DNA from: Ylistrum balloti
Lineage: Eukaryota
Length of the DNA: 64,000 nucleotides
Assembly: GCF_031769215.1 (NCBI RefSeq)
Contig: NW_026781968.1
Coordinates: 620,001-684,000, forward strand
Direction of reading: 5' to 3'
Shown: positions 31,742-61,480 of the stretch, piece by piece
Layout: each line of letters opens with the position of its first letter
How positions within the stretch are numbered: position 1 is the first letter of the stretch
The notes under the pieces: generated by a model
What the model was told of the DNA's origin: nothing
The model's input: only the letters and a program-made list of their open reading frames with translations
The model's database searches: none
Made by a program: the position numbers and the translations under genes

Positions 31742-33767
31742 ATGAAGCAAGGTAAGATATCATTTAAAAGTAACATGTGTATATTAACATATGTAGATAT
31801 ACTGGATACAAATACCACTTGATATCAAGCGAACAACTATATGAAAACTGGATTGTACGTAAACATTAATATTTATTTGAACATTTAATAATGCTAAGCA
31901 AATAAAACACTCACATTTTCTACAAAGAGTTAGTGGATATAGTACAGTGTATAATTATGACGAAACAATACCCTAGTATTACTTCATTTTTTGTTACATG
32001 ATATTATCAATGTTCTCTCTTTTTTATTCTCCGCTGCATTTTATGGACTATCTGCCATTTTGCAAATTTCCTATCTGATTTTTGGAGAAGTTGTAACTGT
32101 TTTTAACATAATCGTCAAAGCTCGCTTCGTAATAAATATATTGTCTTTGAAATTGACTACATAACCCATCAGCTATTTTTTCCTATTTTCTGTTACAGTA
32201 AGTGCTCTCAGTTATTTACTCGTCATTGTCTCCTTCCTGGTCTGTCTTCTCTCGCTCGTAGTGGAGACAGCACCTACCCCTGGATACACGGGGGTATGGA
32301 GAAATCCTTGCGAAGACACCACACCTTCTTTTGAACCCTACAATACAACAAACCAAGAGAAATCAATGGTTTTAAGCGATATCAATACCAATCTCAATGA
32401 AGCAGAAAACATAGCAACCGACATTAAGAATGAATATGTAAGTTTAGTTATACCTGTACGTTGTAGATGTAACATAGTATTTCTCGCTTTAATCTGAGAC
32501 AAATTCATACAAGCTATCAATATGTTTCGGCGATACTTAATTTGTGGATCATTGGTCATCCTTTATAGTAAAGACATCACATAGTAATCTTCCAGAGTCA
32601 TCTGTAATATTCTACAGTGTATATACTTGCTATGGTATGTTATATATGACTTGCTATTTCACAGTATGAAACAAGGCTAATGACTATGTGAAAAATATAA
32701 TCTTGAACGTTTAACATATTGATCTACATAATACAGTACATTTTATAATATCTTGGGTACTTATGGATATAACATTCGGTTTCAGAGATTGCATCGTGTT
32801 GCAAGTCAAGTATCTAACGAGACATGTGTGTCCAACTTTGAGGATAATCTAGACAATATATACTTACACGTTCCCGGATTTCCGGATCTAAGCACGTATT
32901 TCGTTGGTTCCGACGCCATCGCTATCTGCGCAAATGTAAGTGTTCTTCTTCTATTACCAATGCTATGTTTACCAATAGGTTTGATTTGAACACAGTATCT
33001 TTCTATATGTAGAAATCAAACACCATCAGAATATCATAAAGATTTTTTGTTATTGTGATGTGTTTGCTTTTTTAAAAAATTCCATTTCGTGGAAGTATGC
33101 ATGTCGGTTTAACATGAAAAATAAATTATGTACCCTAACCAAGAAATTTCATTTTTGTTTTTATCAATGCTCATACATTTCTTCATTAATCGTATTTAAA
33201 GGGATTCGGTTTTAATCTTCAAAAGTAGTTTTCGATATGTTTCGCTAATATGGCGGCTTTGAGTTAAGGTAAATAAGGCATTTTCCCATGAATCATGCTT
33301 CCATTATTAGATGTGTTCGACTACCATGCTTGCTTTTTAAATCCTAGTCCATTGTTGTTTGGAAGTTAAATTTGTGAACAAATTACAGCAGTGAATAAAC
33401 TATATTATATAATTATATATTGTTGTTACAGATTTCTGCGGCATTGCTACATGATTACAAAAACCTGGTTCGTGTTATGATTTACCTAGAAGAAACCATC
33501 CAGGAAGAACATGATGAAAGCTATGAACAACAGTTGAAGAATCTACATGATGCGATCAAGGGGGTCATGTGTAAATTTCACGTGCTTGAGCAGCCCTGCG
33601 GCCTGGAAGAGCAAGGTCTAAATGTTACCGACATTATCAAACAATACAAAGTATCCCGTCAAAATGAGCGTGATTACCTGTTGATTAGAGATACAATCAT
33701 ACTTATGCGTGGCCTTCATAAAAGGTACAATACATGTAATGCATTGTATAGTAAAACCTCCGGATAA
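31742..33767 (+). CDS. secreted long-chain four-helix cytokine-like protein 1 (IL-6/LIF/Unpaired-like), 244 aa
   Basis: Exons 31742-31751, 32199-32437, 32786-32935, 33432-33767 (phases 1,0,0) with strong splice sites. Signal peptide MKQVSALSYLLVIVSFLVCLLSLVVETA; WRNPC motif; four amphipathic segments (SMVLSDINTNLNEAENIATDIKNEY; AALLHDYKNLVRVMIYLEETIQEE; YEQQLKNLHDAIKGVMCKF; ERDYLLIRDTIILMRGLHKRY). The gene model is solid; the family call is inference. Confidence 0.8.
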
Positions 33768-35348
33768 TTCTAGTCATCACACATTTGTCTCCTAGTTTGA
33801 AACACAAAGCATAAATTGACGTTACCTTGTTTGTATCATTTAGAATGCCAGAACTTTGTTTAAAGTGTTCATTGTATGAATGATGCCAAGTTTTGTATAG
33901 AAATGAATAGCAGTAAGACTGTCAGCTGTTCGCATAAGTCACAATTATCAGTTCAGGAAGTACCACTATACCTTGAAACATGTATGCTATTGTAATGATC
34001 AAGTTACACATCAGTATTTGTGACTGCTGTTTCTGTTTTTTTGTTTTGTTTTTTGTTTTTTATTTGTTAAATATTGTATATATATATATATATATTTGTG
34101 TACTTTACCTGTTTGGACAACTAATATACAAGATATTTGCTTGTTTCCCATAAAAAGTTTCTTCATAATAACCGTTATCAGTATTACTACATACAATGAC
34201 GTGCGCTGTTGGCTAGGATATCATGCTTCATTACTTGGAACGAAAATATTTTGATATTATATATATGTGTGTACGTGAGTGTATTACATATACATAACAT
34301 GTATGTAAGTGGAACAACGTCACAGTATTGACTGTCTTAAGGTTATGGACCATTTGTTCATAGAAAATGTACGATTATATTAATCAATGATGGTTTTTAA
34401 TTTGTTTGTATTTTTATAATGGACATTATTGTTATGTTGGTAATATTTTTCTATTATGATCGTATAATATTGCAAGTTTGTTTTTATTTCAATAAGTGTA
34501 TATGTATTTTTATATCCCTTTTTACTGATTGGTTATATTGACTTCTCAATACGATTGTAAATGAAACTTAGCTTGATTTTTGAAAGAGGTTTTTATGTTT
34601 ATATAAATAAAGCAATTTATTACCAGTTTCTCTCTCGATTATATTTTCCTGGTATGTACTTTTATTCCCGATGTTAATAAATCATCGGATTAAGCAGTCA
34701 ATAGAACCCCACTGCAATAACAACAAATCGATATGTTTATCGTTGTTACGTAAATGAGTGCATGGACGATCCATTACATGTTTTGCACGTGGCGCAACTG
34801 TCGCACGTGCGACAGACAGACAGTCGACAGTGGTGACACATACATGTGTCTGTGTTCGCCTAGCGTTCGATAACTGAATTTGTAAATATCCAAGCTTGCC
34901 AGCCTAACAAATGTGATATTTTCAGTGTGCTAGCTTCAGCGTCCTCTTGCCAGTGAGTCAGTGAGTACAGAATTTGATGAGACAATACGTACAAAAATGA
35001 AATGCCAAAAACCAGTTGTCCTTAACCGAGGTTGTTTTCTGTCAAGATTTTCACTTGGTTTTCCACAATTTAGCCAATAGAATTCTACGCGTGGAAGTTG
35101 CTGCTATTCCACATCAAGCTCGATTCCAAGATAAACATTTTATCCCTTCCAAGTCTTGCATTTCTATTCAAGTATTTTCAAAGATATCCTTATTTCACTC
35201 AATATGTGCAACAAGAGGTCATATATATTCTATTTAGATTTAGATACGTAGTGAACCGCGTGAACGGATGTATTTACTTTGAAGATGATTCTAGGCATGG
35301 CCTCGAGTATAATGATAAATATTATGTAAGAATGAAGATTATTCCATA

Positions 35349-36201
35349 CAGTACCAACTAAAAAAGTCAACGATTTGTATCTGGTAAGTGATTTAGAAGG
35401 AAATTAAGGGATTTGGAAGAGAACTCGGTAATCTGAGATCGAAATGGACTAATTGTTGGAGCTGGCTAGTCAATACCGGCTATGTCCCCCATTCGCTCTA
35501 TCCATAGCCCTGATCCTCCTTGGCATGGAGTTCTTGAGTGAGTTTATCATCCTCATTGGGATGTTTGGACCATTCTTCCAAGAGGACTGCTCTCAGTTGG
35601 GCCAGAGTATCAGGGGGAGACTGGCGCCGTCGAACCTGTGCATGTGCCGCCACCCAAGCCAAACGACACTGCTGACGAGCAGCGGTAAGGGACAGACCTA
35701 CAAACAGGTGACATGCCCGCAGACCAACTTCCCGCAATCGTGTCCTTACAGTTTGTGCATGGTCTGTCAACAACCCGCCCAGTTTCCCTTATACGTCTAT
35801 AGTGCAAATATGGACACCGAAATGTCTGACAACCTGTATTTGCCTTTGACCTTGCATAATTATCGCAGTGGCCTGACCCCTCAAAAACGTCCGTCAGCCG
35901 TGCCATTGTTTAATGTTATCAGAAATTAATCAAAATATCGGAAAATGACGTGTCTCTATGAGGTCTACCTAATGGCATGGTAAGCACTGTAACTCAGTGT
36001 CACAACATTATTGTGCAAGAGATTTTCCCGTTTCGAGCTTTCCCCGGAAGACATCGACACGCAATATAATAATGCAAAATTCAACACAGGACCGCGTGAA
36101 CTGTAATCTAGATAGTTCTTTAACCGATTTTCATTGTTTTTGAATACCGCGCTCACAAGATATTGCAAACAATGTTACACTGCATTTCTTTATCCCTCGA
36201 G
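35349..36201 (-). mobile_element. non-autonomous Tc1/mariner element with an internally deleted, frameshifted transposase
   Basis: The minus strand gives MARLTD..AIIMQGQRQIQVVRHFGVHICTI (HTH), RETGRVVDRP, AQTVRTRLREVGLRA..RLAWVAAH, then jumps directly to RRRQSPPDTLAQLRAVLLEEW..SMPRRIRAMDRANGGHSRY* (stop at 35470-35472). TA dinucleotides flank the inferred ends; the terminal inverted repeats match poorly, so the boundaries are approximate. Confidence 0.88.
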
Positions 36202-36479
36202 TATATATATTTTTACACATTTGGTGCCCTCGTTGTTAAACATACTATTCAATTTGGTATTTTTGGTGTGAAATTAAGCTTGGTGATTAAGCAATATATC
36301 TTTCTATATGGAGTAGGCAGATTCTCCTGAACTTACGACCGTGAACAAGCCAACTTTCTGATTGACATTCGATGAAAATAGTGGAATACGAATGAAAGAG
36401 TTCTACAGATAGGTAAACTTCCTAACTTTCTAATTAACCTTTGGATCTAGATCTACTTCTCAATGTCGATTTGGTAATC

Positions 36480-37250
36480 AGAACTTGAACTAGGGAACTT
36501 ATAATTCCATATTTTTGTTACTGCTCAGTACAAATACAACGAAATAATTAAAAAAGTTGTTTAAAACAAATCCCGTATAGTTTCGACCCTGCTTCTTAGC
36601 AATGGGCGTCATATATACACAAGCTTCATGTCATCTGTCCAAAGCGTAAGTTTTTGACGAGTACTTTAAATGATGAGCTTGCTGGTGAAAAATTACGAAT
36701 ATTTTGATGAATTTATTGATATAAAATCGAGGCCACTTTGAATGTAAAGCTACGGAAATTTTGACGAGTTTCTTTGTAGGGATACTGAGCTTTCGACGAG
36801 ATTGTTCTTCTGAAGGCAACCATTCTGAGCCTGTTAAGTCTTTGTGGTGCTGCTCTATCATCTTGTGTTATAGGTACGTATTATTCCCCTCCATGTTATT
36901 TCCTTAAAATTCTATTTGGTTCTATTTTTCCCATTTCAGTTTGATACACATATTTTATCCCGTGGATTATCACCAGGGCTGGTGGCTATAATTCATACAC
37001 CTAGATCACAATAGCCCCACATTAGAACTTATGGTTTAAACAGATTCGCCAAAGAAGTTCTCTTCTACACATACTGTCCCATACTTCAATCCTATCTAGT
37101 GATCTTCAGCTAATCTTCTTTGTTAGAGTAATGACAAGTTTTACGGTTGTCTCCCTTTCAATACTTTACTATATAGATATATTGTTACCATGTCTCTTAC
37201 AAACGTATATAAAGAAATATTTTGTCAAACCCATTTGCTAGGGGCGCAGT
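36480..37250 (-). mobile_element. eroded CR1/L2-like LINE 3' remnant
   Basis: Minus-strand frames give DLGV near 37010 and EEQSRRKLSIPT near 36800, resembling the EKDLGV and EERLRKLNLPT motifs of CR1/L2 ORF2 C-termini in the right order. There are many stops, and the boundaries are approximate. Confidence 0.4.
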
Positions 37251-37820
37251 TTAACTTTACTTCAATTGTTCTATTACTTGTGAATATCTTGCCGCCGATT
37301 TAAAACAAAATGTCGTTAGAGATTGGATCCCATCAGGATGATTACGTTGAGGGATTAGTAACGAATTTCAGGTTTTGAAACTTTCTATTGCCCATTCTTT
37401 GTGTTCTGAGTGTCTAGTAGCTAGCCGGACCAATTCCTAGTAAAGAGTTTGAGTTATAAATGATAAACAATTTATATTCGTTTGAGAGAATCGAATAAGA
37501 ACATAGATATATTTATCGTTGTTACGTAAACGTTTTACATGTAGACATTCGACAGTGGTGACCTGAACAGGTGTCGGTTTTCGCCTCGATTAGACAGGAC
37601 TTCCCACCTACCCACCCTAATCTATGTAATCAAATGAACGTTGCTTCGTTTTGTTCGTCTTTCAGTAACCATTCAATCCAGATGTGGGATGTTCTGAGTA
37701 CACGGTTGCCTACAGATACCTTTGTGAGGGAAAAATAATTTCAGTGGATCTTGCCCGAGACGAGAATTTTGTAATGTTATGCCAATTTTATTGTATATTT
37801 ACTCATTTGAATTGTGCGAG

Positions 37821-38200
37821 TCCTAGTAGGTAGGCGGACGAACTTGTCTGTGTGCCTAGTAGCTAGGCGGACGAACTCGTCTGCGTGCCTAGTAGCTAGG
37901 CGGACGAACTCGTCTGCGTGCCTAGTAGCTAGGCGAACAAGATCGTCTGTGTGCCAAGTAGCTAAGCGGACAAGCTCGTCCGTGTGCCTAGTAGCTAGGC
38001 GGACGAACTTGACTGTGTGCCAGTAACTAGGCGGACGAACATGTCTTTGTGCCTAGTAGCTAGGCGGACACACATGTCTTTGTGCCTAGTAGCTAGGCGG
38101 ACGCACTCGTCTTTGTGCCTAGTAGCTTGGCGGACGAACTTGTCTGTGTGCCTAGTAGCTAGGCGGACAAACTCGTCTGTGTGCCTAGTAGGTAGGCGGA
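37821..38200. repeat. 33-bp GC-richer tandem array (11 full units plus a partial) with two internal hairpins per unit
   Basis: Consensus GCCTAGTAGCTAGGCGGACGAACTCGTCTGTGT; units start at 37821, 37854, 37887, 37920, 37953, 37986, 38019 (32 bp), 38051, 38084, 38117, 38150, 38183. Confidence 0.97.
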
Positions 38201-39362
38201 GAAAGTCCAAGTAATGTGTATGATTTATAAATGATGGAGAATTTCTGTTCCTTTGAGAGAATCTCGTAACCATCAAATATTATTATGCAAATGAAGTTAA
38301 TGGAAATGTTATAAAGATGAAAACGATTCCATGTACTTTTAATTATCATTTCAGTCCGTATACTGATCTTTCCATCGGTAAATCATTCTTTCATTTAATT
38401 AGGGGAGAGTGTCTGTTAATGTCAAGTAATGCCAGGTAACCGGAAAAGCAAAAACAATAAGTGATACGAATGTTGGTCGAGCCGATTTAATGATCAAATT
38501 GTTGATGCTGCCGATTAATGATAAAATGTGATGCCAATGTTGTCCGCATTAGTTAGTGTTACAAGTGATATCGTATGAAAATAACAGTCATATATACCTA
38601 GTGCATTAGACTAGGCTTTATGAGTTGGTAATCATTTATCTCTAAAACGCCAACTGATTTATGTTATATGGCGAAAGACAAGTTACAGGACTTGTACTGA
38701 CATTCCGTCTTATGTTGTAAAAACAAGTATTAATCGCTATCCCAGTTATCATTAACCCCTCGACGTATGCGAAAAGCGTTGTCCTCTTGATGTGAAAGGT
38801 GTGAAAAGGAGAATGAATTTAGGTTTTAATAAATGAAAATAAAAGAATAAAAGAAGGTTGTATTTTTTCATGTAGGAAGATTTTTTCCCGATTCAGCATA
38901 ACGATTTATTTCAATATGTGTTATACTTGGATGGAAGTTAACAAAGGTATTTGTGACCATACATATTCGCCCTTTCGACATAACATAGAGCTCATATGCT
39001 ACAGTCGAGCTGTATGATTTACTGACATTTCAGGTGTAAAAAGCTGACAAACTATTTTCTGACAACGAGGAAAATAATTTGAAGTTGCGGACGGGAACGC
39101 CTCACAATAATTAATATTTACTGTACAGTATTGATATATCTATTCAAATTAATCAGTCCGATTTCCTATTTTTCTTCTTTCTGTTAAGTATGAGGTAACA
39201 TATTTTAAAATAATAATAATAAACTGGAAAACAATGCGGTATCTGATGTGTAATCTGAATGCCATTAACCTTTCGATTATAAAATTTGGTTTTATTGTTT
39301 CGAGAAGTATAAGCTTGAGCCACACATACACTCCAATGGGCTTGTGTAGGGTAAGGGGGTAG

Positions 39363-39405
39363 TGTGTGTGCGTACATATGCGTGCACGCGCGCGCGTGTG
39401 TGTGT
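39363..39405. repeat. alternating purine-pyrimidine tract (TG/CG)
   Basis: GTGTGTGTGCGTACATATGCGTGCACGCGCGCGCGTGTGTGTGT. Confidence 0.85.
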
Positions 39406-42400: not shown

Positions 42401-42576
42401 TTTGCTTTTGGTCAACTTCAATATACCTATGCAGAATAAAAAAAAATATTACAACTCGATAATGAATGTTGACAGCAATATACATAGATTTTAAATGGCA
42501 AAGAAGTCATCAATGCGATGCTTAAGATTTTTTATCATTTCAGAGATAACCCCTTGTTCGTGCATTGGATGTATCA

Positions 42577-44224
42577 ATGAAGATGTCAAACAGCGGGTTC
42601 CTTTATGTTTCTATCGCTGTGGCTCTGGTGTCAACGTTTTCCACGGGATGTTTCGGAGGTAATGCATTTAGATATTTCTTACTGGCGTTGATCGCTTTAC
42701 CGTTTGTTACTGTATTTGCATCCGCACAGATACAAAATAGTCGTAATTGGACATCAAAATGTCCGTTTCATACAAAGTACTGTCACTGATAAAAAAATTT
42801 TTCCTGCAAATATAATGGATTTGTCGAAACTTTTCTTACCAGGTAGATTTTGACTGTTTACAAATTTGTAAATCTACTGAAGTAAAAATTTCAGAAAACA
42901 TGGATTAAGGCCCAATGATAAAATTTAGACCACAGGGAGTTTTTCAGAAATATGCAAATATATCAAGGATTAACAATCTACAAACTTACTCCAATAACAC
43001 CATGATATATCTAATATATTTTGGGTTTGAATATTTTTTATTTCGCGAAAAACGTACGAGTTATTTATTTCTGAATTCTTTTTTAACTGTCATTTTAGGT
43101 ATTATTAGCAGAAGTGCTTTGTCGGATTCCTTCAACGGGTTCACCCCAAACGGTCTCCATAGCAACATGACCAACGATCCCGTATTGTTATGGATACCGG
43201 GATTCATATTTCCACACAGCAATGGCGATAACGAGATGAATACGATGAAGGAAATGCAGATGGCATTGCTGTCCGAATTTGACATGGAAGGTCTGGGCCC
43301 TTTGATCCTTGGGTGAGTAAAACTGAGTAAATTAAGGAAGCAATGTTAGTTTATAGTAAATAGCATTACGATACCGTAATAAGTGGAGACAATTAAGTTT
43401 AGTTTAATATAAATGTTATTTATGTCTTCAAATCACAGACTTGTTATTTCATATACATATCGACTGGATATCGAAGAAATTTCTTTAATTGCATCGATGA
43501 AATGATTAGTCTATTTGCAAGCAATTTGAACTGTAGCGAAACAATTACACGATACGTTTAATTGTTTTTTAAGTAATAAAAGTAAATATTATTTAGTCAC
43601 ATCTTTATAATCTATGATTACAAAAATTGGTATTTTTTAATTGAGAGTTATGTCTATTTGAATAATGGTAATGGTCTCTGCCTCTTAGATAGATTTATTT
43701 TTTTTACCAGATCACAACTCCATGGAGATGGAGCCACAAAGGAAACTCTTCAACTCAACAGTCCATCTTTCCACGGCAAAACGATTACGTCCACAAATAA
43801 AGCAAACAAGAAAGTCAGTCAACCTAAACAGTCATCACGCGTCGACAAAAAGAAGAAAACAAACAAAAATGGAAGCAAGACTTTAACGAACAAAGGCAAC
43901 ACTGTATCAAGTGAAGCTGCGAAACCAAAACGACGCACCAAAAGTCACCCCACAACGTCTAGAAAGGACAGTAAGAAGAGAACCAGAAGACCACACACTA
44001 ACAAACACAAACAACGGTCAAAAAAGGTTTCTAAACAAGACAAGACAAAAAAGAGAGGTCGATCGAAGCCAAAATCATCGAAGGTTAAGATGCAGAGGAA
44101 AGTTCAACACAGTTCATTATCAGACAAGAAGATTTTCCCATCTGGGGAGATGATGAAAAATCTGCGCTATCAGCCACGTGTATCTGCAGAGGAGATGGAA
44201 GAATTTTTCAGAAGTGTATTTTGA
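42577..44224 (+). CDS. orphan secreted protein A with Lys/Arg/Ser-rich tail, 269 aa
   Basis: Exons 42577-42658, 43099-43312 (214 nt), 43711-44224; phases 1,2. Signal peptide MKMSNSGFLYVSIAVALVSTFSTGCFG; middle exon with NMTNDPVLLWIPGFI..MKEMQMALLSEFDMEGLG; last exon about 35 K plus 14 R in 170 aa (hand count). Paralogous to the gene at 51913. Confidence 0.85.
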
Positions 44225-46820: not shown

Positions 46821-47979
46821 TCATTTTAGGAAATAACTTATGAACTTTTCAAAATATACAACAGAGTATTTTACGACATATGCCTCAGAAGACACGTATC
46901 TCTCTAGAATTATGGTAGAGCGTCCTGTTCCATTTTCACTGTATTCATGAAACAAGAAAAGTGCATCTTGTTTGTATGCACAACAAAATGCATCAGCTAA
47001 AACACAATTGTAGAAATAATCCATGCTAAATATTTATTCCTTTCCAAAACAAATAATCAACAGAATAGAAAAACACAATACTCAGAAAATGAAAACTTTC
47101 GCACCATCAAAGTGTCATAATCACATATTACAGTGCTATACAGCTGTTCCATCAGTTACAGTATTTGTAAAACAAATAAAAATTACAATAATACATTGCT
47201 GCATCAAAGAAATATCAAATATAGATAATTGACATTAGTGTTAATATCCCTGAACAGGAATAGCTTTTCTAATTTTTCTTTTGAAAAATAGTAAATAACA
47301 TTTTTGATGACGTTTATAAAAGGAATTATTGCAGATATCTTTCATATTTTACTTTTCAAACACAATAGAACAAATAGGCTATACCATAAGTCATTCACAT
47401 ACCACTCTAGTCATGTTTTCAATACATTACGACCGTCAATGCTTCCCTTCTCTCTATTTGGTGTTGGTATTACGTGATTAATAACTATACTGTTACTCTC
47501 ATCAACTGAATGTTCTGCTCTCTTTCTCTCTTTCTACAACAATACGTAATGTCACTCTAAAATCACCGTAACTATTCTGAGTGGTTGGATAAATATATAA
47601 TACATACCAAAAAATGGTGTATGACTTTTCGGTCTATTGCTTGCTGGAGAAGTTGAACTTTGACAGCAAGATTGCTTCACTCAGTCGCGCATATTACTTA
47701 TTTTCTTATTTCTAAAATCATTAGTGTTGTATAATAATTTACAGTATGTCATTACAGGAAATTTATTAACGCCCCAGTTGATATCGTAATCATACTGCGG
47801 TAGAAACAAGTCACTGAAACTCGTTATATACGGTATTTCTTTCACTCTCGGTTTTTTTAAAGTAACAAAACACACGACCTTGTCAGCGAGTGCTTTTGTA
47901 ACTTTGAAAAGACAAGTAACTGTAATGAGAGAAAAGTCACGTAAAAGAACTACTCGTTGCGTAATCTTTATAGCCAAAA
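46821..47979 (-). other. two phase-compatible open exon candidates of an unidentified gene or pseudogene
   Basis: 47979-47743 (strong acceptor tttttgtaatttttctaacag, donor T|gtaaat) joins 46996-46821 in frame to a stop. No start exon was found and I recognise no homology. Confidence 0.3.
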
Positions 47980-50900: not shown

Positions 50901-51912
50901 CATGGCTCTAACAAGCTTCCTGTCGTATGGATGTGACCGCTGGTTTTTTTTATAGCTCTATGAAAGTTAAAAAACGACTTTCAATCAATATACATATCAC
51001 ATAATCAGCTTGTGATCTAATGAGTTCCCCTATGTAATGTTTTTGTGTTTATGTCACTAGTGTGTCACTTCTAGGACTCGTTTAATAAATTCTCGTATGA
51101 AAAGAAAACCCCTTTGATATTTATATAATTTATGAATAAGCAATATATACAACAATTTAATTAACAATAAAAATGTTCATAATTGAGGATTGAGAATATA
51201 CATTGATGAAACAGAAGGCAAGTAAACTTTTGAAATAATTATCTACCAAACATGGTTACGGTCAAGCATTTTACGATAAACCGCATAGTCATTTTATGTC
51301 TCGTACACACGTTCAAATGACGTTTTTATAGATGACCTCTAACCAATATGAGCCACAGCGACAGTTTGATTAGGGATAGCTGTCAAACGATGCTTTAGTG
51401 ATTTGCGTGGGTGATGACAATGCTACATATATAACAAGCTGCACTTGAACGTCTAAATCAGTGTAGTAAATCGTGAAATGTGTGATACTTTTGGATTTAT
51501 AACGAAAATGGGTGTTTATATGTATATTTCAAACAACTGACAATGGAATCCTCTTCATGCTAGAGTGGATTTGGTTTCTTCATCTGATATCATATAGAAC
51601 AAGAACGCACAGACACATTGAAAAGAATTGCTATTTCAACAACGTAACAAAATTAACTAATCCTTGAAGTCAAATGCATGGGGAATAATAACTCGAATAT
51701 ATATGCAGAAATATCAAGAATTAAACAGACAGATTTGAAAAACATTACAAATCAAATGTCTGCACAAAGTCTTCCTTTAAGAAATTGAAAACTGAAAACT
51801 TTCAGTTGCCAGGATCCTTATCTGGACAATAACGGCTACTACTGTAAAACAAGGAAGAATATTATCCTTTCAGAAATAGCCTTCAAGTTGCGGTTTGGAA
51901 CTATCTGGAAAG

Positions 51913-53454
51913 ATGTCTGTCTTCTTGTTCTGTGCTGTATGCACTGTTGCAGTCGTATCGTCATTTCCAATGGAAGGTTTTGCAGGTAAGTCTGTTTTTG
52001 TATGTTTTGATGTTTATTGTCAACATTGGACGGTTTTCTTTTAAGAATAAACATAATATGATGTTTTGAAAGAAAGAAAAACTTGTATTTACTTTATAAC
52101 ATAAGAATAAGAGTCATCTTTAATGTTTATCATATAATGTTATATATTCTGATGGCTGCTAGTGGTTTTTTTTTAAAGACATATCTAAATCTGTTATATT
52201 TATTAGAACTGCTTGGAAGGAGGTGGCATATGTAGCCATTAAATAAAACCAAAACTTATGTCTATTAAGTGAGATATCGGTTTTGGCTAACCTGTTGCAC
52301 AGATAATTTACCGAAGCACACGGATAAATAGTAATCAAGTTTGAGGTAACATGTAAAACAAAGGAGAGAGAAATCCTTTCTTTGACACCAAAACTTTGAT
52401 GCTGTTTTGCATTTGGTTTAGTTTTTTATTTTATTTTATCTACCCATGCTTCGTATTTTACATTATTTTTGCCAAGGTTTCCTTGTATGCTTTGTTTAAA
52501 GGGATGTGAAGGAATACGTGACTCTAACGTTTATTTTTTTTACTGAAAGTACAAGTTTTGTCGTTTTAGTACAAAATACTGTGGGCCCCCCAACGAACTT
52601 CTTCAGTAAGTTCATTCCGAAAAGTGCCGTAGCCAACATGACTAGTAACCCAATGCTGCAGTGGATACCTGACTTTATATCACAAACCGTCAATGCTGCC
52701 AGGGAGAGGAAGATGATGAAACAAATGCGACAGTCTATGATGACTGATGTTGACATGGGCGGTCTCGGAGGAATGATGGCCCAGTGAGTACACCAACAGT
52801 TTTTAATATATAACGAAACCAACAGGGACAGCTTTCCACCAAGCTGCATAATAAGCATAACAATTTCACTCTTTCTACAATATTCCTGCTTTCCTATGGC
52901 GGTTACATGTCATTTGGTATTCAAGTTCAGCTACCCAAATATCACGATTTGCCTGCAAGAGGCCAGTGGTCATTATTGGGGAGTTTTATAGAACATGACA
53001 TCACACATTTATAATGAACAAGATTAACATTGCGTGGGTTGGCGTTGATGCAGAAGACGCTTATGCGTTCAGCACACCTAATTAAACATATTTTTTCATG
53101 AGCATTCGATGAAATCGGTATTTGCCTTGTTGTATTGGTATAGCCTGGTTAATCTTGCTGTAAATGACATTTGTTCTAAAAGAAAGAGTGAGGTATATAG
53201 TAACATATTTAATAAAATTCTAAAAGTAAAACGATTTTGTAACCTTTCTATTGTTTTATAATCTCCTTATATAAAGTTTATTTAAAAGAACATAGACATC
53301 ACATAATACTGGTGTTATTTACAGGAGTCCTGGAGGATCGATGGGTCTGTCTCTATCCAATACTGGTGCTCAAGGCTTCGCCATGGCGGCTGACAATCCA
53401 ATGGGAGAGTTGTTCGCAGGAGGTTATGGCGCGATGGCAGATGGAATGATATAG
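51913..53454 (+). CDS. orphan secreted Met/Gly-rich protein B, 138 aa
   Basis: Exons 51913-51985, 52570-52783 (214 nt), 53325-53454; phases 1,2. Signal peptide MSVFLFCAVCTVAVVSSFPMEGFA; NMTSNPMLQWIPDFI..MMKQMRQSMMTDVDMGGLG; tail SPGGSMGLSLSNTGAQGFAMAADNPMGELFAGGYGAMADGMI*; 17 Met by hand count. Confidence 0.85.
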
Positions 53455-54739
53455 ACAATATAGGTTATTTCAATACCTCACCTTCTTCATATACAAATGT
53501 TCCTATCCTTGTGGAGTGATCGTTACAGTGCGAGTGAGCATTTAAAATGCCCCAGATCGGTGTATCATAATAAACAAATGATAAAAGTACATAAATACAT
53601 TTTAAGTATACAGCATAACTTATAAAATATACCTGACTACGTATATTACAAATGTGTATAGAGAAAATCTGTCCAAGTTTGTGGTATCTCCCCATGTAAT
53701 TGACCTTGATACTATTCAAAAGTATGATTATAATTGTCAGAAACATATCATTTAGAAAAAATAAAAACACAAAGGTCCAAAACGTTAAGAAATGATTACA
53801 TGCTTTTCACCAAAACAACTGAAACACTGAATTGATTTCCATATCTAGACAAAATAATGTATTCATATTGGCACACGTTCAGTTGTAAAGCAAACTCTTG
53901 GAATTAGAAAAGATGTGAAGAATGACTACGAACGATCAGATCTATTTCTCCGAGCGGTTATGACAATGTAGAACAACCTGATGTATTGTTATCTTACACC
54001 TTCCTTTCTGTGTTACTGGAGCAACTGTTACAGAATTCAATACCTTTGATGAGAAAATTTTGAGATATTATAACGTGTTGCTGATGTGTATCTATCCTGG
54101 ACTCTGACAAGTATGTCTAGTCACTTGTAGTGCTGTAATTCGTTATTCAATAATGTGTTCGGTGATGCTACTGTTTCACCAAACTGATTATCATTTAATA
54201 AACCATTATGTAGTTTATAAAATGATACGGAATATCAATAAAATATAATCGATAGTTGCTTTGTTGTTATTTATGTTAGCATGACTATAGTACCGGGTAG
54301 CTGGCAAAATTCACGTCAAAGCTTTTGCGATTTTCTTTCCAAACGATCAAATAATATGTGTCGAATTAAAGTACTGTAAAATGAAATCTAATACACATGT
54401 CTCATTATTTTACGAATCTTTTGCAATCACATTATTGTAACGCAGAATAGCTCATATATATATATTCAAACTCAGAACTCAGAAGTCAGATGTTCAGGAA
54501 AGATGTCTATTCTGAAAACCCGTGACACTTGGCGTGGTGCTTTCTGTTTTGTCCTAACAGAATGGCAATGTCATTAAAGTATGTTTTAAAGTGCGTTTTA
54601 TAACGATAACCTTTTGTTTCAAGGGCAAGCGGCTTTTTCACAAGACACATAAAGAACCATACATTTCGTGACAGGAATATCTCATCCTGACGGTAAAATC
54701 TTTAAAAACGTACATACTTTAATTACCTTAATTGAAATG

Positions 54740-54990
54740 ACTGATTAATCTTACGGTATGGTTTGTTAGCTTGTGGGCGTGTTTAATATTCGTTAGTTTG
54801 CCTGTTGGCTCCGTTGTTGTATACCTTGTTCTCATTTAAGAATGTGACATTACTTACTTGGATTGACCAAGGGTTACATAGCAAGTGTCACCTGGTCTGA
54901 CTCTCCCTGTACTTTTTTCAGGAGTCTCCGTGTAAATCTCTCTTTGGTTCATATTATCTTCAAATGTTGAAATTTTCTACATGTTTTTAT
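54740..54990 (+). mobile_element. SINE-like copy of the same family as 22170-22400
   Basis: About 90 bp of clear similarity to 22190-22275 (TTGCCTGTTG, TTGTATACCTT, GAATGTGACATT, GATTGACCAA, GTGTC). Confidence 0.55.
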
Positions 54991-57027
54991 ATCATTTGTG
55001 TAAGGATGTATAACGTTATTCAACTGTGACATTATATGTCAACAAAAAATTATGAAGCAACAGGACTCATTTAGAGAACTATTAAGTGGATTAGCTTAAT
55101 TAGTTAAAATGTTCCACATATCGCTAAGTTTGGACATAAGGAAATATTTTACGAAACAGCTCACAATTTTATGAAGTTTTGTTTTCAGTGTATCTGTTTT
55201 CCACAATAACAGCTTTCACAATATTAAGACTGTGATCCCCATGTTAAAAACCAGTTATATCTTTTATTCGTAAAACCAGGAGTGCTCCCGTGAAATGAAG
55301 GAGAACTTGAAACAACACAGTTAACCTTTACTGAAAATGTGTGTTATTCCACACGTCTGTGTGGATATTAATAGCGCTTCCCTGTAACAGCTTGTTTCTT
55401 GTTCAAGGTTTAACATTTACGCGGAAAAAATGTAATTGTTATTACTTTGTTGGTATAAGTGGGAGATGAGAACATCATATAACCACAAACACCGTGTCTG
55501 TAAGGTCAGAGCTGTAGTGACACTAACCCCATACCACTTGTCATAATTCATCCACTAACGTCAAGGCGTTGTACTAGCTTTAATCATCTTCTTTAAAACA
55601 GATGGTTTCGCTGTCGACGAATACCTAAAATAACACTAAGACTGTGTGTTTCTAAAGTAAATAGGTATTGTGTTTTTATCGTTCTGACAAGCCTAGATAT
55701 GAAGACTTTTCGATTATATCCTTGATTATTGTTTTATCATTTGGACCTCTTTGTCACACTGTACCATCTTATATATAGAAGAACAGCACCACTGATCCAA
55801 GTCGTTATACATATTTCAATGATGTTTTTTTTTCGTTGCCACAAATATTCTTACCTGATTTGTCACTTTTAATTATTTAGACCAACATATTCGTGGTTTG
55901 TGTCTGAATATTAACGCGATCATAGTGACAGACTAAAATGACCCATTTCCCATCTACAAAACAGCCATAACGTTACTCTTGGCTTCCTTTCACTGATTCC
56001 TACAGTGATTTACCTGCAAATGTGACAAAAACCTGTGGTGACAAATATAGGATTGTAACTGAAGTGACATTACCCTTTAACCGTGTCTAATTATTGCACC
56101 TTAAGGGGTAGAACTTTGATATTTGGCACGTGCGTTAGTTTTAACAAGAACTTTCTGGTGGTACAAACATGACATTTGTAATGAGGTAAAAGAAAATTAT
56201 TACCACAATGAAGACATAAGTGTTTCACAAAGTGTGCATGCAATTATCACATGCCTTCCAGAATAAAATTTCAATATCCCACTTCAGAATTTTGTTGCAG
56301 CCGTGGACATATTGTCTTATAAATACATCTTGTTTTAAAATCTAGAACAGCTATATGCGCCTTGTTTCAAACTGAAACAAGAAAGGCTTCCTTCTGTCTC
56401 CTTCCTTCTCCTCACCATCGCCAAGTATAAATAATGATGTATAAGTGTAGTTCTGGCGCAGAATCTCATAGTATAATACTCCTTCAGAAGAAAAGTGGAA
56501 ATCATATTTGCAGAGATCGAGTTGCTAATAGATATAAAATTTCACAATTAATCAATCTTTTCATGTTAAAGTTTGATATCATGTAGATAAAACAAAAGTA
56601 CGCAAGTGTCCAAATGATCCTAGACTGAAATACCTCCATCATAGAAGTACTACATTTCACTCATTTTCTAAGTGTTTTCAATCGTTACCGCGAAGGTGCA
56701 GAAATGTTCGACACTTAAGTGTAGTAAATGTCCAAATATTGTTGAATGCTATTCAGTGTGGTAATCGCACATTTGCACAATTAAACATTTCTTCGTTCTA
56801 TTTGCAGTGGTTCATATAGTCACAACGCCAAATCTGTTGATATCTATTTCATTTGATCTGATTGGTTTCTCTCCTTTTGACTAATAGTACTTTATTTTTA
56901 TAATTTCTAGAACATTTTCTTCAGGTTGGTAATGTCAGTAGAATAAAAATTCTTGCAACACAATCAGTAGAAGATTAGAGTGTGACGTTTCGATGTCTAT
57001 TCATAAAAAAACGACCGGAGTGGAACA

Positions 57028-57192
57028 TACTAGCACTGACGTACGTAGTGTACGAGATGTTAATGAATCGACCAAATGCACTATAATCCTATGTACACTA
57101 AGGTCGAAAATAGTGTGACGGACTTATTGTACGTAGGATTATAGTAAGTCGATTCCTTACCATCCCATGCACTATGTACGTTAGTGCTAGTA
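57028..57192. mobile_element. 161-bp foldback MITE flanked by TA
   Basis: TA|CTAGCACTGACGTACGTAGTG.. and ..CACTATGTACGTTAGTGCTAG|TA. The arms of about 75 bp are reverse complementary along their length (GAATCGAC, ACTATAATCCTA, GTACA blocks) around a loop of about 12 nt. Confidence 0.8.
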
Positions 57193-59227
57193 CGCCCAAC
57201 ACTGATCATTTGTCTGATGAAGGTGACCGCGTAGCCATCGACATGTCACACTTTAATCTCCTACTGGTTGTCTTATAAAGACTTCTGTTTTACTTTTGAC
57301 TTCAGTGATGGGTGCCAGTCCAAGGGTATAACGTTAAATTTACCCCAGCTTTAAATATGTTAGAGATAAAAAGTCATTATTCTTATTGTCAGTTAACTTG
57401 TGCTTAGTGTTATATCATACAACTGTGCACTGATAATTGACATCTCAGTGTAATCGCGCTATGAAAGAGCCTTTGGGTGGTTCTATCATTACTAGACGCC
57501 GTTTTTATATGACTCATAGAAAACTCCAACAAAACTGAAACGTACTTACAACAAATACATCATTATGTTTATAAGCATTTTATTCATATATAAAAAAATC
57601 AAAAAGATATCAACGGAAAACGTATGTACATGGTATGGCAAGTATGTGGTTTATGATAAACATTTTAAGACAGATGTGACAGAATTTTTTTATCTGTCAA
57701 TTATGAATTCCATAAAAAATTGATACAAAAAACAAACGAATCTTGAAATGTAATAAAACATCATATTGGCGGAACTGATATATTTTTACATTTCGCGGAG
57801 AACTTATTTATTTTTACATATCGCGGAGATTCGAAAGATAATAAAATCATCGAATTCTTTAATCGCATAGGTATATGTAGCATTGATTGTCACATTCCAT
57901 ATTTACATTCATCGTTTTTCTGCTGTTTCTACTCTCAATTGTACGTTCATAAGATAGAATAAGATTTACCATCCTCGATCATTGAAGGTACAAGCGAAAT
58001 AATTTAATTAGTACCAGGAAAAAAACCTGACCAATCACAAGCTGATACGCTCCTTTTGAAGATTCTCACCAGAGAATCGCTAAATTGAAAAATGATTTTT
58101 GTATCATAAATCTGACATAAAATGGAAACTACTGTACGATCCTACATGTAAGTTATAACTATCTGGCGCGTTAAATCTTCACGTAATATATATTACAACT
58201 TTGATGTTAAGTCGTCCCGTCATTGCAAGGTAAAATGCGTTAAAGTGAAAATGGTTGCCAATAAATGGGAAAGAATTTACACTAACATACACATATTTAC
58301 AACAATGGAGATTTATTTATTTATTTTTTTTTCTTATCCATCGTTTGTCTTTGGCTTGAATAGGTGAACTAGATATTAACGTATGTGGGTCACAGCATAT
58401 GGTCAGTTACTTGAAAATGCAACATTGTATGTAATATGTAGGTAATGAGTAATTTCTCAAATGCAAGACAAAATGTCCATTGTGGTGATTAAAACACAAC
58501 CTGAGCATTAAAAATAAAGACGATGCAATAAATATAAATAGGATTAAATCGATTTCATGTGCAAAAGCATCATTAAAATCTAACATTGAAAAAATTGACA
58601 CTGTACAAAATATAGTGTATGACGGGTGATGAAATAAATATTCAAAATGTAAATAAAATTAATAAAAAAAAGTCTCTTTATATTTAAGTAGAATTAATTG
58701 ACTTAGATATGTTGATCTCGGTAAAGTAATGGGACTGATAATTTAAAGGGACTTGTGGGTATTAACATCAATTTAAACAATTATAATTATATCATCTAGT
58801 AAATAATATAAATAATAGAAAAATAAGTAAAAAGTGAAATATCAGCACCAGCAGAAATCGCCATAGCATTGCGACTTCTAAATACATTATACACTATAGA
58901 CTTAAAGAACGGATACCTAACAGGAAGTTGTTGACGGTTGGATTACGTGTGCCAAGCCTGGAGAGAAACATGTAAACATTTACGTGTAGATATATGTGTA
59001 CATATCCGTGTAACATTATATATTTATCCCAATCCTACAGTATTGACAGATCCGGCTATCATACTGTTAATGTATATATATTGTTCTCAGTTGTACTGCA
59101 GAAGCTAATAACCAGTGTAGAAAATACTTAAATCTATTAGGAACAAGAAAATTGGAGTATTTATCAATGTCTGTAGAACATCCTCGCTCCCTATGTGCAG
59201 ATAGGTCAAGTTATACCGTTGGCTTCC

Positions 59228-61369
59228 TTATCGAACCTGGAGTCGCATAACTTTTGTAAAGTCAAGTATATAGCTGAGAGCTGCTTCCGTTTCGAACATT
59301 TGTAGCATTATGTTATACATAGTTCCGAGTACATAGAATACTCGGTATTTCGAATAAAATCGGACCTTTTCGGGGTTCATCCTTTCTGGTGTCTGCTGAC
59401 TAATCTTTGCACCGTAGTACATTTTTGCCTGTAAATAAACCAAAGGAAACATGTAATTAAAATAATTAATATCGCTGTTTGATTTAATTACCCTTATTTG
59501 TCTTATCACTGATGAAAATTTATTTAAAACATTCACCAGAGTGAAAGTATCGGTCAAACTCTGTGATCTCTGTATTTCTTTTATAATCAAAAATATGTTA
59601 TTTCTATACTGATTTCATCATATACAGCAATGTAAAAGTCACGGCCCTACTGTAAAGCATCTCTTTACCACCAACATGGAGTGTCTATACATACATGCAG
59701 TTACTCCTCAAGATAATAATTCTATTACTTTAAGTAAGCTTATATTTAACATTTTAAATAACAGTTTATTTTCTTGAATATCTTTGTTTAAAAAAATTAA
59801 TAAATAAAAACAAGAATGAACACACAATCGAAACCCCAAATTAAATGATTGCTTTGATAGAAGACATACAACATTTGATAGAATTCCACTGTATACAGTA
59901 TAGATACGCTAATCGTTGTCGAGAGTTTACCTAGTATATCATAATACCGCTAGATGTCCAGACCAATCTAGTACAGTTAAATATATACTCTGTATTTCGA
60001 CTGGTGTTAATTCATTTGTGTTCATCCTGTTATAGACCCACCTCCTTTTCCAGTCCAAGGATGAGCTCGTCCAACTGGGGAACAATGACGCCATTCAAGG
60101 AACAATACAGGGAGGACCCCAAAGTGCAGTCGACGTCACAGACGGCCTCGCTTCCACAAATATGTCGTTTTTCAATAGCTAGAAGGTCAGTCAGGTTTCC
60201 CCAATGGTAACGAAGTACTTGGATGACGTCAATAAGCAATTTCTATAACATTAAATGAACATCGTATGTGTGTATATATAGCGAGAGACAGACATAAGTT
60301 AGCAGGAACTCCCATGTCAACTCAACCGTAAAAAACAAACAAGAAATATTTGTAGACTTGTCACAGTTATCAATATGTACTAAATATATATTATACTTAA
60401 ATATTTCTTTAAAGAATACATTAATGATAAACATGAGTATGGACTCATAATTGATTATAACAAAATTCACAAAGAAATAAATCATTTTTAATTCAGTGAT
60501 ATACTGATGTCCGATTCATGCTTCTTGCTTATACTATACTTCTGATTAGGAAACTAATACGTGATGGAATATCTGAAATGTATTTTCTTCGTTGTAATTT
60601 TTATGCATTTTGACACAATGGTTAGAAAAAGATAAAATTATTCAAAATACCTTGTTAAACCTTTTCTGCTTCTTGATCATCATGACTTCGTTTGATGGTG
60701 ACCGGATGAAATCTCGTACATTCCAGTTATTAACAAGATTAAACGAGAAGTCTAAGCAATCGTCTGGTATCACGTCATTATTATCTTTACACTGAAAAAC
60801 ATAAATAATACGTGAGTGTTAAAGTTGTATAAAATGTTGAAATAAGTAAATAACTGAAGGAAAATTCTATGATACTCCTTCAAATTCATTCGTTATTTGT
60901 AATTCTCAAAAGTTAGAATTAAAATGCTACTTACATGATTTAATACAAGACGTTCCAGAGAATTTCCAAGAAATTTCACTAGAGGTATTGCCGTTTTGGA
61001 TACACTTTTCCAGAATCGGAAATGCAAGGATGCCGACCCTCCCAACCTAAGGGAGGACAATTGAGACCTTCCATCCGTGTAAGAATTTTCTGATGACACC
61101 ATATCTGAATTTAACGCCGTATTAGTGTATGACTTGGGTGATGGAATGGACAATCTCTGATCTGTATCAACTTCTGTGTTTGGTTGGATTTCCATAACGG
61201 ACAACTGTGAAATTCTGTCTGTATTCTCATCTCGTGTGCTTGCGGTTGTCTCGGAGAAATTTGGTGGAAAATTGTACTTGTCTTCTGTATTCTTCTTTAT
61301 AATTGGTATCGAGAATCCTGATGCTACCAGAAGCAACTCAACAACCAACTCGATTATCAAAATATTCAT
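59228..61369 (-). CDS. secreted long-chain four-helix cytokine-like protein 2 (LIF/CNTF/CLCF1-like motifs), 325 aa
   Basis: Exons 61369-60935 (acceptor at 61375), 60791-60651, 60242-60042, 59428-59228, all phase 0 and all open. Signal peptide MNILIIELVVELLLVASGFS; Ser/Thr-rich pro-segment; helix-like segments FWKSVSKTAIPLVKFLGNSLERLVLNH, KLLIDVIQVLRYHWGNLTDLLAIEK, VIVPQLDELILGLEKEAKMYY, RFYSKYRVFYVLGTMYNIMLQMF (FxxK motif). The gene model is solid; the family call is inference. Confidence 0.8.

Positions 61370-61449: not shown

Positions 61450-61480
<31 letters not shown>

Follow-up and report, generated by a model that had tools for sequence, protein, structure and literature searches.

Genes for two predicted helical cytokine-like proteins enclose a pair of secreted paralogues in the scallop Ylistrum balloti

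Introduction

Do the two outer genes of a four-gene cluster in Ylistrum balloti encode class I cytokines, and do the four genes form a signalling unit together with a neighbouring iRhom-like gene? Both had been proposed in an initial annotation of this locus. To our knowledge, no ligand of the mollusc JAK-STAT pathway has been described. IL6R-like, JAK and STAT genes have been reported in Mollusca, while ligands of the IL-6 family have been reported only from vertebrates (PMC13203501).

A cluster of four conserved genes for secreted proteins

The window analysed is the whole stretch of 64,000 nt from Y. balloti contig NW_026781968.1 (positions 620,001-684,000, assembly GCF_031769215.1), and all coordinates given here are positions in this window. 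Four spliced genes, g1 to g4, each with a signal peptide and all with canonical GT-AG introns, lie in the interval 31742-61369. The interval runs from start codon to start codon, from the g1 ATG at 31742 (plus strand) to that of g4 at 61369 (minus strand). The N-terminus of all four proteins is hydrophobic (Kyte-Doolittle mean of 2.4-3.4 over 12 residues), from which secretion was called with a hydropathy heuristic; the hydropathy scan revealed no membrane-type segment after this first one. The interval contains four genuine scallop genes that are conserved and encode secreted proteins; four genes for signal-peptide proteins had been claimed for the region between 31 and 62 kb. The statement that these proteins belong to no recognisable family also held: Pfam returned no family for any exon of g1 to g4 or for any of the full-length proteins, and relatives were found by sequence in scallops only. 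Purifying selection acts on g1, g3 and g4 (dN/dS 0.11-0.27). Microsynteny, which had been suggested as a check, is present among scallops: Pecten retains the order g1-g2-g3-g4, and g3 and g4 stay together in four scallop genera. Besides the four genes, the interval yielded one coding-like feature, the remnant of a Tc1/mariner transposase at about 35.5 kb.

The inner genes are paralogues

The plus-strand gene g2 (exons 42577-42658, 43099-43312 and 43711-44224) encodes a secreted protein of 269 aa, and g3 (exons 51913-51985, 52570-52783 and 53325-53454, also plus strand) one of 138 aa. That the inner two genes are secreted paralogues was borne out by blastp (E 9e-16) and by identical intron phases; moreover, exon 2 is 214 nt long in both. 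The g2 protein consists of a 70-aa core in common with g3, followed by a very basic tail rich in Lys, Arg and Ser (pI 10.5). In g3 this core is followed by a tail rich in Met, Gly and Ala, and the mature protein has no cysteines.

Gene calls in the Y. balloti record do not include g2. Its last exon falls in the third-longest stop-free frame in the whole window. Its first exon shows 57% identity to the beginning of a Pecten gene, called with 1126 aa, in the syntenic place 9 kb beyond the g1 orthologue on the downstream side. The g3 model corresponds to LOC132544026 (P0005), which is 100% identical to g3 exon 2 and has the same length as the model (138 aa). Orthologues of g3 are present in Pecten, Argopecten and Mizuhopecten (70-76%), with dN/dS of 0.11-0.24. 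Both genes belong to a small secreted protein family with low-complexity tails, seen here in scallops only, and their place between the cytokine-like genes would most likely reflect simple linkage.

Predicted cytokine fold of the g1 product

The secreted 244-aa protein of g1 is encoded on the plus strand by four exons (31742-31751, 32199-32437, 32786-32935 and 33432-33767). The first intron is in phase 1 and interrupts the signal peptide after codon 3; the other two are in phase 0 and lie within the domain. The annotated Pecten maximus gene LOC117339900 (protein P0009) matches g1 exon by exon and is its orthologue (47-67% per exon in tblastn, 62% across the last exon). A g1-like protein from Mizuhopecten (P0011) is 41-43% identical and is encoded away from the syntenic place. 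The dN/dS of g1 is 0.15-0.19. Hydropathy reaches 3.4 in the N-terminal 12-residue window and never exceeds 1.54 in later 19-residue windows. The non-coding sequence immediately before the g1 start codon (31255..31741, plus strand) is conserved, with multi-frame matches to Pecten sequence L003 at 9484-10011, which adjoins the start of the orthologue on its upstream side. This block is a putative promoter or 5′ UTR.

The fold of g1 was read from a model of the Pecten orthologue P0009, not from the Y. balloti protein itself. The AF2 model has a pLDDT of 66 and a pTM of 0.68, with pLDDT values of 81-90 in the four helices. These long helices run up-up-down-down and are connected by long A-B and C-D loops. 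When this model was compared with 48,161 chains by VIA-align, the best 28 matches were all helical cytokines. IL-11 was aligned with Z 16.6 and an rmsd of 2.6 Å over 160 of 165 residues, followed by CLCF1 (Z 15.2), IL-27p28 (14.9), IL-6 (14.4) and CNTF (13.6), and the best non-cytokine match was a Dps protein with Z 7.9. The alignments with cytokines span 144-170 residues, the long crossover loops among them. Foldseek listed IL-6, IL-27, CNTF and LIF in its leading rows with probabilities up to 0.98, and all E-values were at least 0.13. In the Atlas, P0009 obtained a feature score of 0.95, and the Atlas's own model gave TM values of 0.58/0.77 to an IL-11 cluster; AF2 and the Atlas model are two independent predictors, which agree on P0009. 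A search with the AF2 model of P0009 against the Atlas structures found no cytokine. Altogether, the prediction that g1 encodes a long-chain four-helix-bundle cytokine of the IL-6/IL-11/CNTF kind is well supported by these models.

Gene structure and candidate fold of g4

The gene g4 is encoded on the minus strand (coding exons 61369-60935, 60791-60651, 60242-60042 and 59428-59228), and its secreted 325-aa product is identical letter for letter to Y. balloti LOC132544042 (P0001). It has three introns, all in phase 0 and none in the signal peptide, and an Argopecten transcript contig confirms splicing at the same three sites. This transcript maps onto sequence L005 in five blocks, and an acceptor AG is located just upstream of the g4 ATG, which implies a 5′ UTR exon followed by an intron that ends 6 nt before the ATG. 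Upstream of g4, a conserved non-coding block (61934..62120, minus strand) shows multi-frame matches to L001, L002 and L005; in Argopecten the transcript contig begins 36-183 bp downstream of it. This block is probably the g4 promoter.

The signal peptide of g4 is followed by a variable stretch of about 90 aa, which is probably disordered, and then by a conserved domain of about 215 aa with four predicted helices. Orthologues are 74-86% identical across residues 110-325. The domain has a dN/dS of 0.15-0.17, the N-terminal stretch one of 0.38-0.41. Hydropathy reaches 2.8 in the first 12-residue window, and later 19-residue windows never exceed 1.54. Helices are predicted at residues 111-148, 192-221, 237-264 and 278-324, with a long A-B loop. 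The structural model is of poor quality (pLDDT 38, pTM 0.31). Its best 11 VIA matches are all long-chain cytokines with 124-161 residues aligned; their Z scores of 8.1-11.5 lie below about 13, a range in which, according to the tool's own warning, such values can arise for any helical bundle. Unrelated matches span just a two-helix hairpin. The language-model feature neighbours in the Atlas belong to LIF_OSM, CT-1/CNTF, GH and IL-12a clusters (0.84-0.90), and the best ten family-bearing ones are all in cytokine families. The Atlas structure search with the Atlas's own g4 model returned membrane transporters and GTPases only (TM <0.42) and no cytokine, and the Foldseek list is mixed, with all E-values at least 0.13.

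In the LIFR-recruiting subgroup (LIF, CNTF, OSM and CT-1), site III includes a Phe and a Lys (F-x-x-K) at the start of helix D. The g4 protein contains F283-x-x-K286 within predicted helix D; the motif is F-x-x-K in Mizuhopecten and Y-x-x-K in Argopecten and is absent from g1. As a motif of two residues it is no proof. Taken together, the designation of g4 as a candidate long-chain helical cytokine is moderately supported. The earlier call of both outer genes as class I cytokines has strong support for g1 through its Pecten orthologue, where Z is 16.6 against 7.9 for the best non-cytokine, and moderate support for g4.

Relationship between g1 and g4

Sequence searches connected neither gene with known cytokines. 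The Pfam families IL6, LIF_OSM, CNTF, IL11, GCSF and Hormone_1 did not match any exon up to an E-value of 10, nor did they match the full-length proteins P0001, P0002, P0013, P0009, P0011 and P0010, and PDB profile searches found no cytokine. The outer genes face each other and share little sequence, as had been noted: the best blastp E-value between g1 and g4 is 0.16, which is no similarity, and hhalign of the two family alignments gives a probability of 0.2%. The paralogy of a tandem cytokine cluster was seen with neither method. In each gene, one phase-0 intron falls 3-4 residues short of the end of helix A, and another falls at the first residue of helix B. The old duplication that had been deduced for the pair is not demonstrable from sequence; proximity and the two shared intron positions and phases are the only hints of it.

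The neighbouring iRhom-like gene

The last two Rhomboid-domain exons of an iRhom-like gene are located at 25347..26822 (plus strand). Pfam PF01694 (Rhomboid) matches 25347-25655 and 26406-26819 with E-values of 8e-9 and 3e-6. The TM4 motif, V-G-G-T-S, has by eye a Thr at the position of the catalytic Ser, as expected for an inactive rhomboid, and the iRhom homology domain was likewise recognised only by eye. An iRhom-like gene does adjoin the locus. In Pecten, no iRhom exon was found within about 9.5 kb upstream of the g1 orthologue.

Discussion

On balance, we lean slightly towards the reading that g1 and g4 encode divergent class I long-chain helical cytokines, with g2, g3 and the iRhom gene as linked neighbours. 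Both proteins would fold like IL-6, IL-11, CNTF, LIF and growth hormone, and removal of the signal peptide would release the four-helix bundle. The bundle would most likely bring class I cytokine receptors (Domeless/gp130/IL6R-like) together and thereby activate JAK and STAT. An ancient local duplication, comparable to vertebrate cytokine clusters, would most likely explain why the two genes lie 25 kb apart, their sequence similarity having been erased since.

Alternatively, g1, g4 or both might be secreted helical bundles unrelated to cytokine receptors, their likeness to cytokines being due to convergence or to a bias of the predictors towards well-known bundles. The lack of a sequence-level link to any cytokine family in Pfam and PDB profiles would fit this, as would families that by sequence occur in scallops only and the tool's warning that helical bundles often give middling Z scores. 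We nevertheless consider it somewhat unlikely, since the cytokine matches of the g1 orthologue score far above unrelated bundles and take in the crossover loops, AF2 and the Atlas agree independently on the fold of this orthologue, and the secretion signal, protein length, paired cysteines, N-glycosylation sites and arrangement of introns are in keeping with secreted cytokines. It is also conceivable that g1 alone is a helical cytokine and that g4 is another conserved secreted helical protein whose proximity is coincidental. Against this, which appears unlikely to us, stand the best 11 VIA matches of g4, exclusively long-chain cytokines aligned over near-full length where unrelated proteins matched a hairpin, the ten best family-bearing Atlas neighbours, which are all cytokine families, and the two intron positions and phases that are equal in g1 and g4; in addition, two genes of a rare fold within 30 kb would hardly be expected by chance. 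The low-confidence g4 model, its mixed Foldseek list, the transporters and GTPases in the Atlas structure search and the lack of similarity to g1 speak for it.

The remaining proposal was that g1 to g4 and the iRhom gene make up one co-regulated secreted-signalling unit, in which cytokines or their receptors would be shed in an iRhom/ADAM17-type manner and g2 and g3 would be accessory. Adjacency (the iRhom exons end at 26822 and g1 starts at 31742) and the gene order kept in Pecten, together with the g3/g4 pair in four genera, could be taken in its favour. Scallop synteny is not evidence of a functional unit, however, because synteny within Pectinidae is expected for any neighbours. Moreover, no iRhom exon precedes the g1 orthologue in Pecten over 9.5 kb, g2 and g3 have no features of signalling proteins (no Pfam family, low-complexity tails, a cysteine-free mature g3), and the cytokine-like proteins, which are soluble by hydropathy, lack a membrane anchor from which they could be shed. 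Nothing ties the iRhom gene, g2 or g3 to the cytokine-like genes; a signalling locus in the sense of a unit is unsupported and very improbable, and the position of the iRhom gene next to g1 would most likely be simple linkage.

With g1 and g4 taken as divergent cytokines, their predicted IL-6/CNTF-type fold makes them candidate ligands of the mollusc JAK-STAT pathway. A shared cytokine fold does not show function. More tentatively, the two might be the helical-cytokine ligands of a molluscan IL6R/Domeless-like receptor-JAK-STAT pathway and the survivors of an ancient cluster, with g4 recruiting a second receptor chain through a LIF/CNTF-like site III (F-x-x-K); this is possible but doubtful. 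If true, gp130-type cytokines would predate the protostome/deuterostome split.

Comparison with known systems

The iRhom (RHBDF)-ADAM17 shedding system resembles the locus in that the neighbouring gene has Rhomboid-domain exons; it differs in that g1 to g4 are linked to that gene by adjacency alone and offer no membrane anchor for shedding. The Drosophila Unpaired proteins (Upd1-3), which are helical and secreted, are regarded as cytokine-like ligands of the gp130-like receptor Domeless upstream of JAK-STAT. They are comparable to g1 and g4 by the role proposed here and have been reported from insects only (PMC13203501). The vertebrate LIF-OSM cluster is matched by two genes for long-chain helical cytokine-like proteins that lie 25 kb apart and have intron positions in common, but g1 and g4 face each other, enclose two unrelated genes and have no sequence similarity left.

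The closest likeness is to the vertebrate gp130/IL-6 family (IL-11, IL-6, CNTF, CLCF1, IL-27p28, LIF and OSM). In structural alignments g1 and g4 are just 5-15% identical to its members and match none of its Pfam families, their cysteine patterns are their own, and g4 has about 90 extra variable residues before helix A. IL-6 genes have an intron in the signal peptide and further introns in the domain (10.64898/2026.04.02.716188). In the presence of introns in these two parts, g1 resembles them; the signal peptide of g4 is uninterrupted, and its three introns, all in phase 0, lie in the domain. At the start of helix D, where LIF and CNTF carry their site-III Phe and Lys, g4 has F-x-x-K and its Argopecten counterpart Y-x-x-K, a likeness of two residues. 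As in this family, the proteins of g1 and g4 are secreted and about 200 residues long after the signal peptide, they are predicted to form a long-chain up-up-down-down bundle with long A-B and C-D loops, and their best structural matches are gp130/IL-6-family cytokines.

Gene models for g1 to g4

Four spliced genes coding for secreted proteins, g1 to g4, are located in the window, which is DNA of the scallop Ylistrum balloti with a low G+C content (29-38%). Gene models were obtained by reading the sequence, followed by a scripted check of splice sites and frames, and all introns are canonical GT-AG introns. The outer gene g1 (31742-33767, + strand) has four exons and codes for 244 amino acids. 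The inner genes g2 (42577-44224) and g3 (51913-53454) are also encoded on the + strand and have three exons each, with products of 269 and 138 amino acids, respectively. The second outer gene, g4 (61369-59228, − strand), has four coding exons and a product of 325 amino acids. The interval given in the initial annotation runs exactly from the start codon of g1 to that of g4.

The g4 model is letter for letter identical to P0001 (uncharacterized protein LOC132544042 of Ylistrum balloti). Exon 2 of g3 shows 100% identity to P0005 (LOC132544026), which has the same length as the g3 model. For g1, each exon has its match in the annotated protein LOC117339900 (P0009) of Pecten maximus. For the spliced g1 and g2 proteins, which are without a reference, database searches were made exon by exon; the exons were joined in local scripts alone, for translation, pairwise blastp and dN/dS. 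A Logan contig of 1505 nt (run SRR18313975) maps to the Argopecten genome in five blocks and contains the spliced g4 orthologue; its splice sites coincide exactly with all three coding introns in the g4 model, and a 5′ UTR exon is added. Two further Logan contigs carrying a g1-like last exon (L008 and L009) were rejected as transcripts, as they are unspliced and look genomic. The sole RNA-search run with this stretch is presumably DNA, since it holds 75% of the words though half of the stretch is intron.

Secretion, relatives and selection

At the N-terminus of all four proteins, small residues follow a strongly hydrophobic segment, and no membrane-type segment was found further on in any of them. 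Pfam searches with every coding exon and with the full-length orthologues, up to an E value of 10, revealed nothing credible; the matches to ToxN, RR_TM4-6, RGS-like and DUF6873 are at chance level. Family-alignment profiles of g1 and of g4, compared to all PDB sequences, gave chance matches alone (E ≥ 0.36).

By sequence, relatives of g1, g3 and g4 were detected in scallops alone. Those of g4 are found in Mizuhopecten, Argopecten and Pecten (74-86% identity over residues 110-325), as are those of g3 (70-76% identity). An exhaustive phmmer search with the last exon of g1 against 1.84 billion representatives yielded three matches: Pecten (62%), a Mizuhopecten gene (43%) and an unspliced contig of no named species (44%). 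Comparison with other scallops gave dN/dS ratios of 0.15-0.19 for g1, 0.11-0.24 for g3, 0.15-0.17 for the helical domain of g4 and 0.38-0.41 for its variable N-terminal stretch; the ratios are rough, as synonymous sites are near saturation. They indicate that g1, g3 and g4 are under purifying selection. Taken together, the gene models, the hydrophobic N-termini, the Pfam result, purifying selection and the splicing in Argopecten confirm four real and conserved genes for secreted orphan proteins.

The g1 protein is predicted to have a long-chain class I cytokine fold

The protein folded with AF2 was the Pecten g1 orthologue, with a seven-row alignment in which three Y. balloti exons were included as separate rows. 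The resulting model (pLDDT 66, pTM 0.68) contains four long helices (55-87, 134-162, 168-189 and 213-245) with pLDDT values of 81-90, connected by long A-B and C-D loops. It was aligned by VIA, without a prefilter, to 48,161 PDB representatives, and the best 28 matches are all helical cytokines. The match to IL-11 has a Z value of 16.6 (rmsd 2.6 Å, 160 of 165 residues), followed by CLCF1 (15.2), IL-27p28 (14.9), IL-6 (14.4), placental lactogen (14.2), CNTF (13.6), OSM (13.4), IL-23p19 (13.1) and LIF (12.8). Among unrelated bundles, the best match is a Dps protein at Z 7.9.

Foldseek likewise placed IL-6, IL-27, CNTF, IL-11 and LIF on top (probability ≤ 0.98, E ≥ 0.13); against PDB, neither this model nor the g4 model gave a match with E ≤ 0.001. 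As independent evidence, clusters with Hormone_1, IL6 and LIF_OSM are neighbours of the g1 orthologue in the ESM Atlas at a feature score of 0.95, and one of these clusters is mainly molluscan. The Atlas's own model of the protein matches an IL-11 cluster with TM 0.58/0.77. An Atlas shape search with the AF2 model returned no cytokine (TM ≤ 0.45). A long-chain class I cytokine fold is thus well supported for g1 by structure prediction, the protein folded being the Pecten orthologue.

The Mizuhopecten gene LOC110447311 (P0011, 185 amino acids; L004, 10001-18538) is 41-43% identical to g1 and located on a different scaffold from the g3 and g4 orthologues. It is probably not the syntenic g1 orthologue (other scaffold, no g2-like exon within 10 kb, 41% identity) and probably a paralogue, which means that scallops would have genes of the g1 family at more than one locus.

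g4 is a second candidate for a helical cytokine

The AF2 model of g4, which was built from a four-sequence alignment, has low confidence (pLDDT 38, pTM 0.31). It is all-helical (111-148, 192-221, 237-264 and 278-324) with a long A-B loop. Its 11 best VIA matches, with 124-161 residues aligned, are all long-chain cytokines: CNTF and IL-11 (Z 11.5 each), CLCF1 (11.0), IL-27p28 (10.4) and IL-6 (10.1) are followed in rank by placental lactogen, leptin, OSM, LIF and EPO, all Z values being below the level that the VIA tool calls safe for helical bundles. Unrelated proteins match a two-helix hairpin only. The Foldseek result is weak (prolactin, E 0.41). The named feature neighbours of g4 in the Atlas all are class I cytokine clusters (0.84-0.90), and the Atlas structure search with g4 returned no cytokine. 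Altogether, a long-chain cytokine fold is moderately supported for g4 by these predictions. The proposal in the initial annotation that both outer genes code for class I cytokines therefore stands well for g1 and moderately for g4, where the model is poor and Z does not exceed 11.5.

At the predicted start of helix D, g4 carries the motif F283-x-x-K286, the first residue being F or Y in the orthologues. The site-III residues of LIF and CNTF are located at this position, and the motif is a lead to a possible LIF/CNTF-like site III in g4.

The annotated product of the Pecten g4 orthologue (P0004, 243 amino acids) is truncated, as the last coding exon is absent from it. The missing exon is present in the genome (L002, 17631-17849) and is 74% identical to residues 253-325 of g4.

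Several features are located upstream of g4. Directly upstream of the ATG lies a CTT/CTTT-rich microsatellite (61375-61620), which is most likely a 5′ UTR intron, because an acceptor AG is found 6 nt before the ATG; the corresponding 5′ UTR intron of the Argopecten g4 transcript is approximately 283 nt long. Translated matches in several frames (63-72%) show that a non-coding block of approximately 190 bp (61934-62120) is conserved in Mizuhopecten, Pecten and Argopecten. The block is probably the promoter, because it is located just upstream of the transcript 5′ end in Argopecten. A C-type lectin gene (L001, 1-2881; 609 amino acid product) is found approximately 7 kb upstream of g4 in Mizuhopecten.

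The inner genes g2 and g3 are paralogues

The inner genes are paralogues (blastp E 9e-16), with intron phases 1 and then 2 and an exon 2 of 214 nt in both. The proteins have a common core of 70 residues, in which a W-I-P motif and a single N-glycosylation site are found, and tails of opposite composition: that of g2 is very basic and Lys/Arg/Ser-rich (pI 10.5), that of g3 is Met/Gly/Ala-rich. Neither protein resembles known signalling proteins.

The Y. balloti record has no called gene for g2. Among the stop-free stretches of the 64-kb window (mean 14 codons), the one that holds the last g2 exon is the third longest. A gene called in Pecten at the syntenic location has a first exon that matches exon 1 of g2, and a duplicate restricted to Ylistrum was therefore rejected. 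The annotated product of this Pecten gene (L003, 21435-22391) has 1126 amino acids, four times the Y. balloti g2 model, and either has a much longer low-complexity tail or is a fused model; the remainder of the gene lies within the 9.9 kb between L003 and L002.

Two further elements were found between the four genes. One is a Tc1/mariner transposase remnant on the minus strand at 35450-35930, between g1 and g2, with a match to Pfam HTH_Tnp_Tc3_2 (E 1.4e-4). The other, segment 49457-49567 between g2 and g3, has a match in Pecten (L002, 6804-6905; 53% over 34 codons, E 8e-7) that precedes the g3 orthologue by approximately 3 kb; it may be either a small exon that was missed or a non-coding element under conservation.

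Gene order and the iRhom-like neighbour

On Pecten maximus chromosome LR736849.1, order and orientation are as in Y. balloti: the g1 orthologue is followed after 9 kb by the gene with the g2-like exon 1, then by the g3 orthologue and, in the opposite orientation, that of g4. Mizuhopecten and Argopecten likewise have g3 and g4 as a convergent pair. All of this synteny lies within a single family (Pectinidae) and would be shown by any two neighbouring genes. The iRhom-like gene is real, with Rhomboid-domain exons at 25347-25655 and 26406-26819, and its end is separated from g1 by 4.9 kb. In Pecten, no iRhom exon was detected in the 9.5 kb that precede the g1 orthologue. Microsynteny with Pecten covers g1-g2-g3-g4 and, over these 9.5 kb, does not extend to iRhom. 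A functional signalling locus that includes g2, g3 and iRhom, as conjectured in the initial annotation, is unlikely, and such a locus would matter only if co-expression were shown.

The active-site motif in TM4 of the iRhom-like protein (26406-26470) reads V-G-G-T-S-T-V-F-G; the catalytic Ser found in active rhomboids is missing, as is the Pro that iRhoms typically have. Upstream of the transmembrane exons lies the longest open frame of the window (18619-19941, + strand; 440 amino acids from the ATG, 451 codons stop-free), which codes for an acidic, Ser/Asn-rich sequence that has no Pfam match. It may be a large cytoplasmic N-terminal iRhom exon or a separate gene.

Origin of g1 and g4

The little sequence similarity noted for the outer pair was borne out: no relation is detectable between g1 and g4 (best blastp E 0.16), and hhalign of the two family alignments gave a probability of 0.2%. 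An old duplication, as had been suggested, is consequently not detectable by sequence. In both genes, a phase-0 intron interrupts helix A three to four residues short of its end (g1 Y83|R84, g4 H145|C146), and helix B has one at its first residue (g1 N133|I134, g4 K192|K193). We infer that two genes with a rare fold are improbable by chance within 30 kb. The two matching phase-0 introns, together with this rare fold being predicted twice, hint at an old common origin.

Comparison with known cytokine systems

IL6R-like receptors, JAK and STAT have been reported in Mollusca, IL-6-family ligands from vertebrates only, and Upd ligands are, among invertebrates, named for insects only (2026 survey, PMC13203501). 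In the literature searched, we found no molluscan helical cytokine described. By prediction, g1 and g4 would work like gp130-family cytokines. By sequence, neither belongs to any defined cytokine family, and the predictions would file them as new class I helical cytokines, not as IL-6, LIF or CNTF. Being conserved and under purifying selection, they are concrete candidate ligands of the molluscan pathway, and since orthologues are present in farmed scallops (Pecten, Mizuhopecten and Argopecten), the ligand question is directly testable. Such ligands escape sequence search, and methods at the level of the fold are needed to find them. The two cytokine candidates deserve experimental follow-up.

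In vertebrate IL-6 genes, one intron interrupts the signal peptide and three interrupt the domain (10.64898/2026.04.02.716188). The signal peptide of g1 likewise has an intron, of phase 1.
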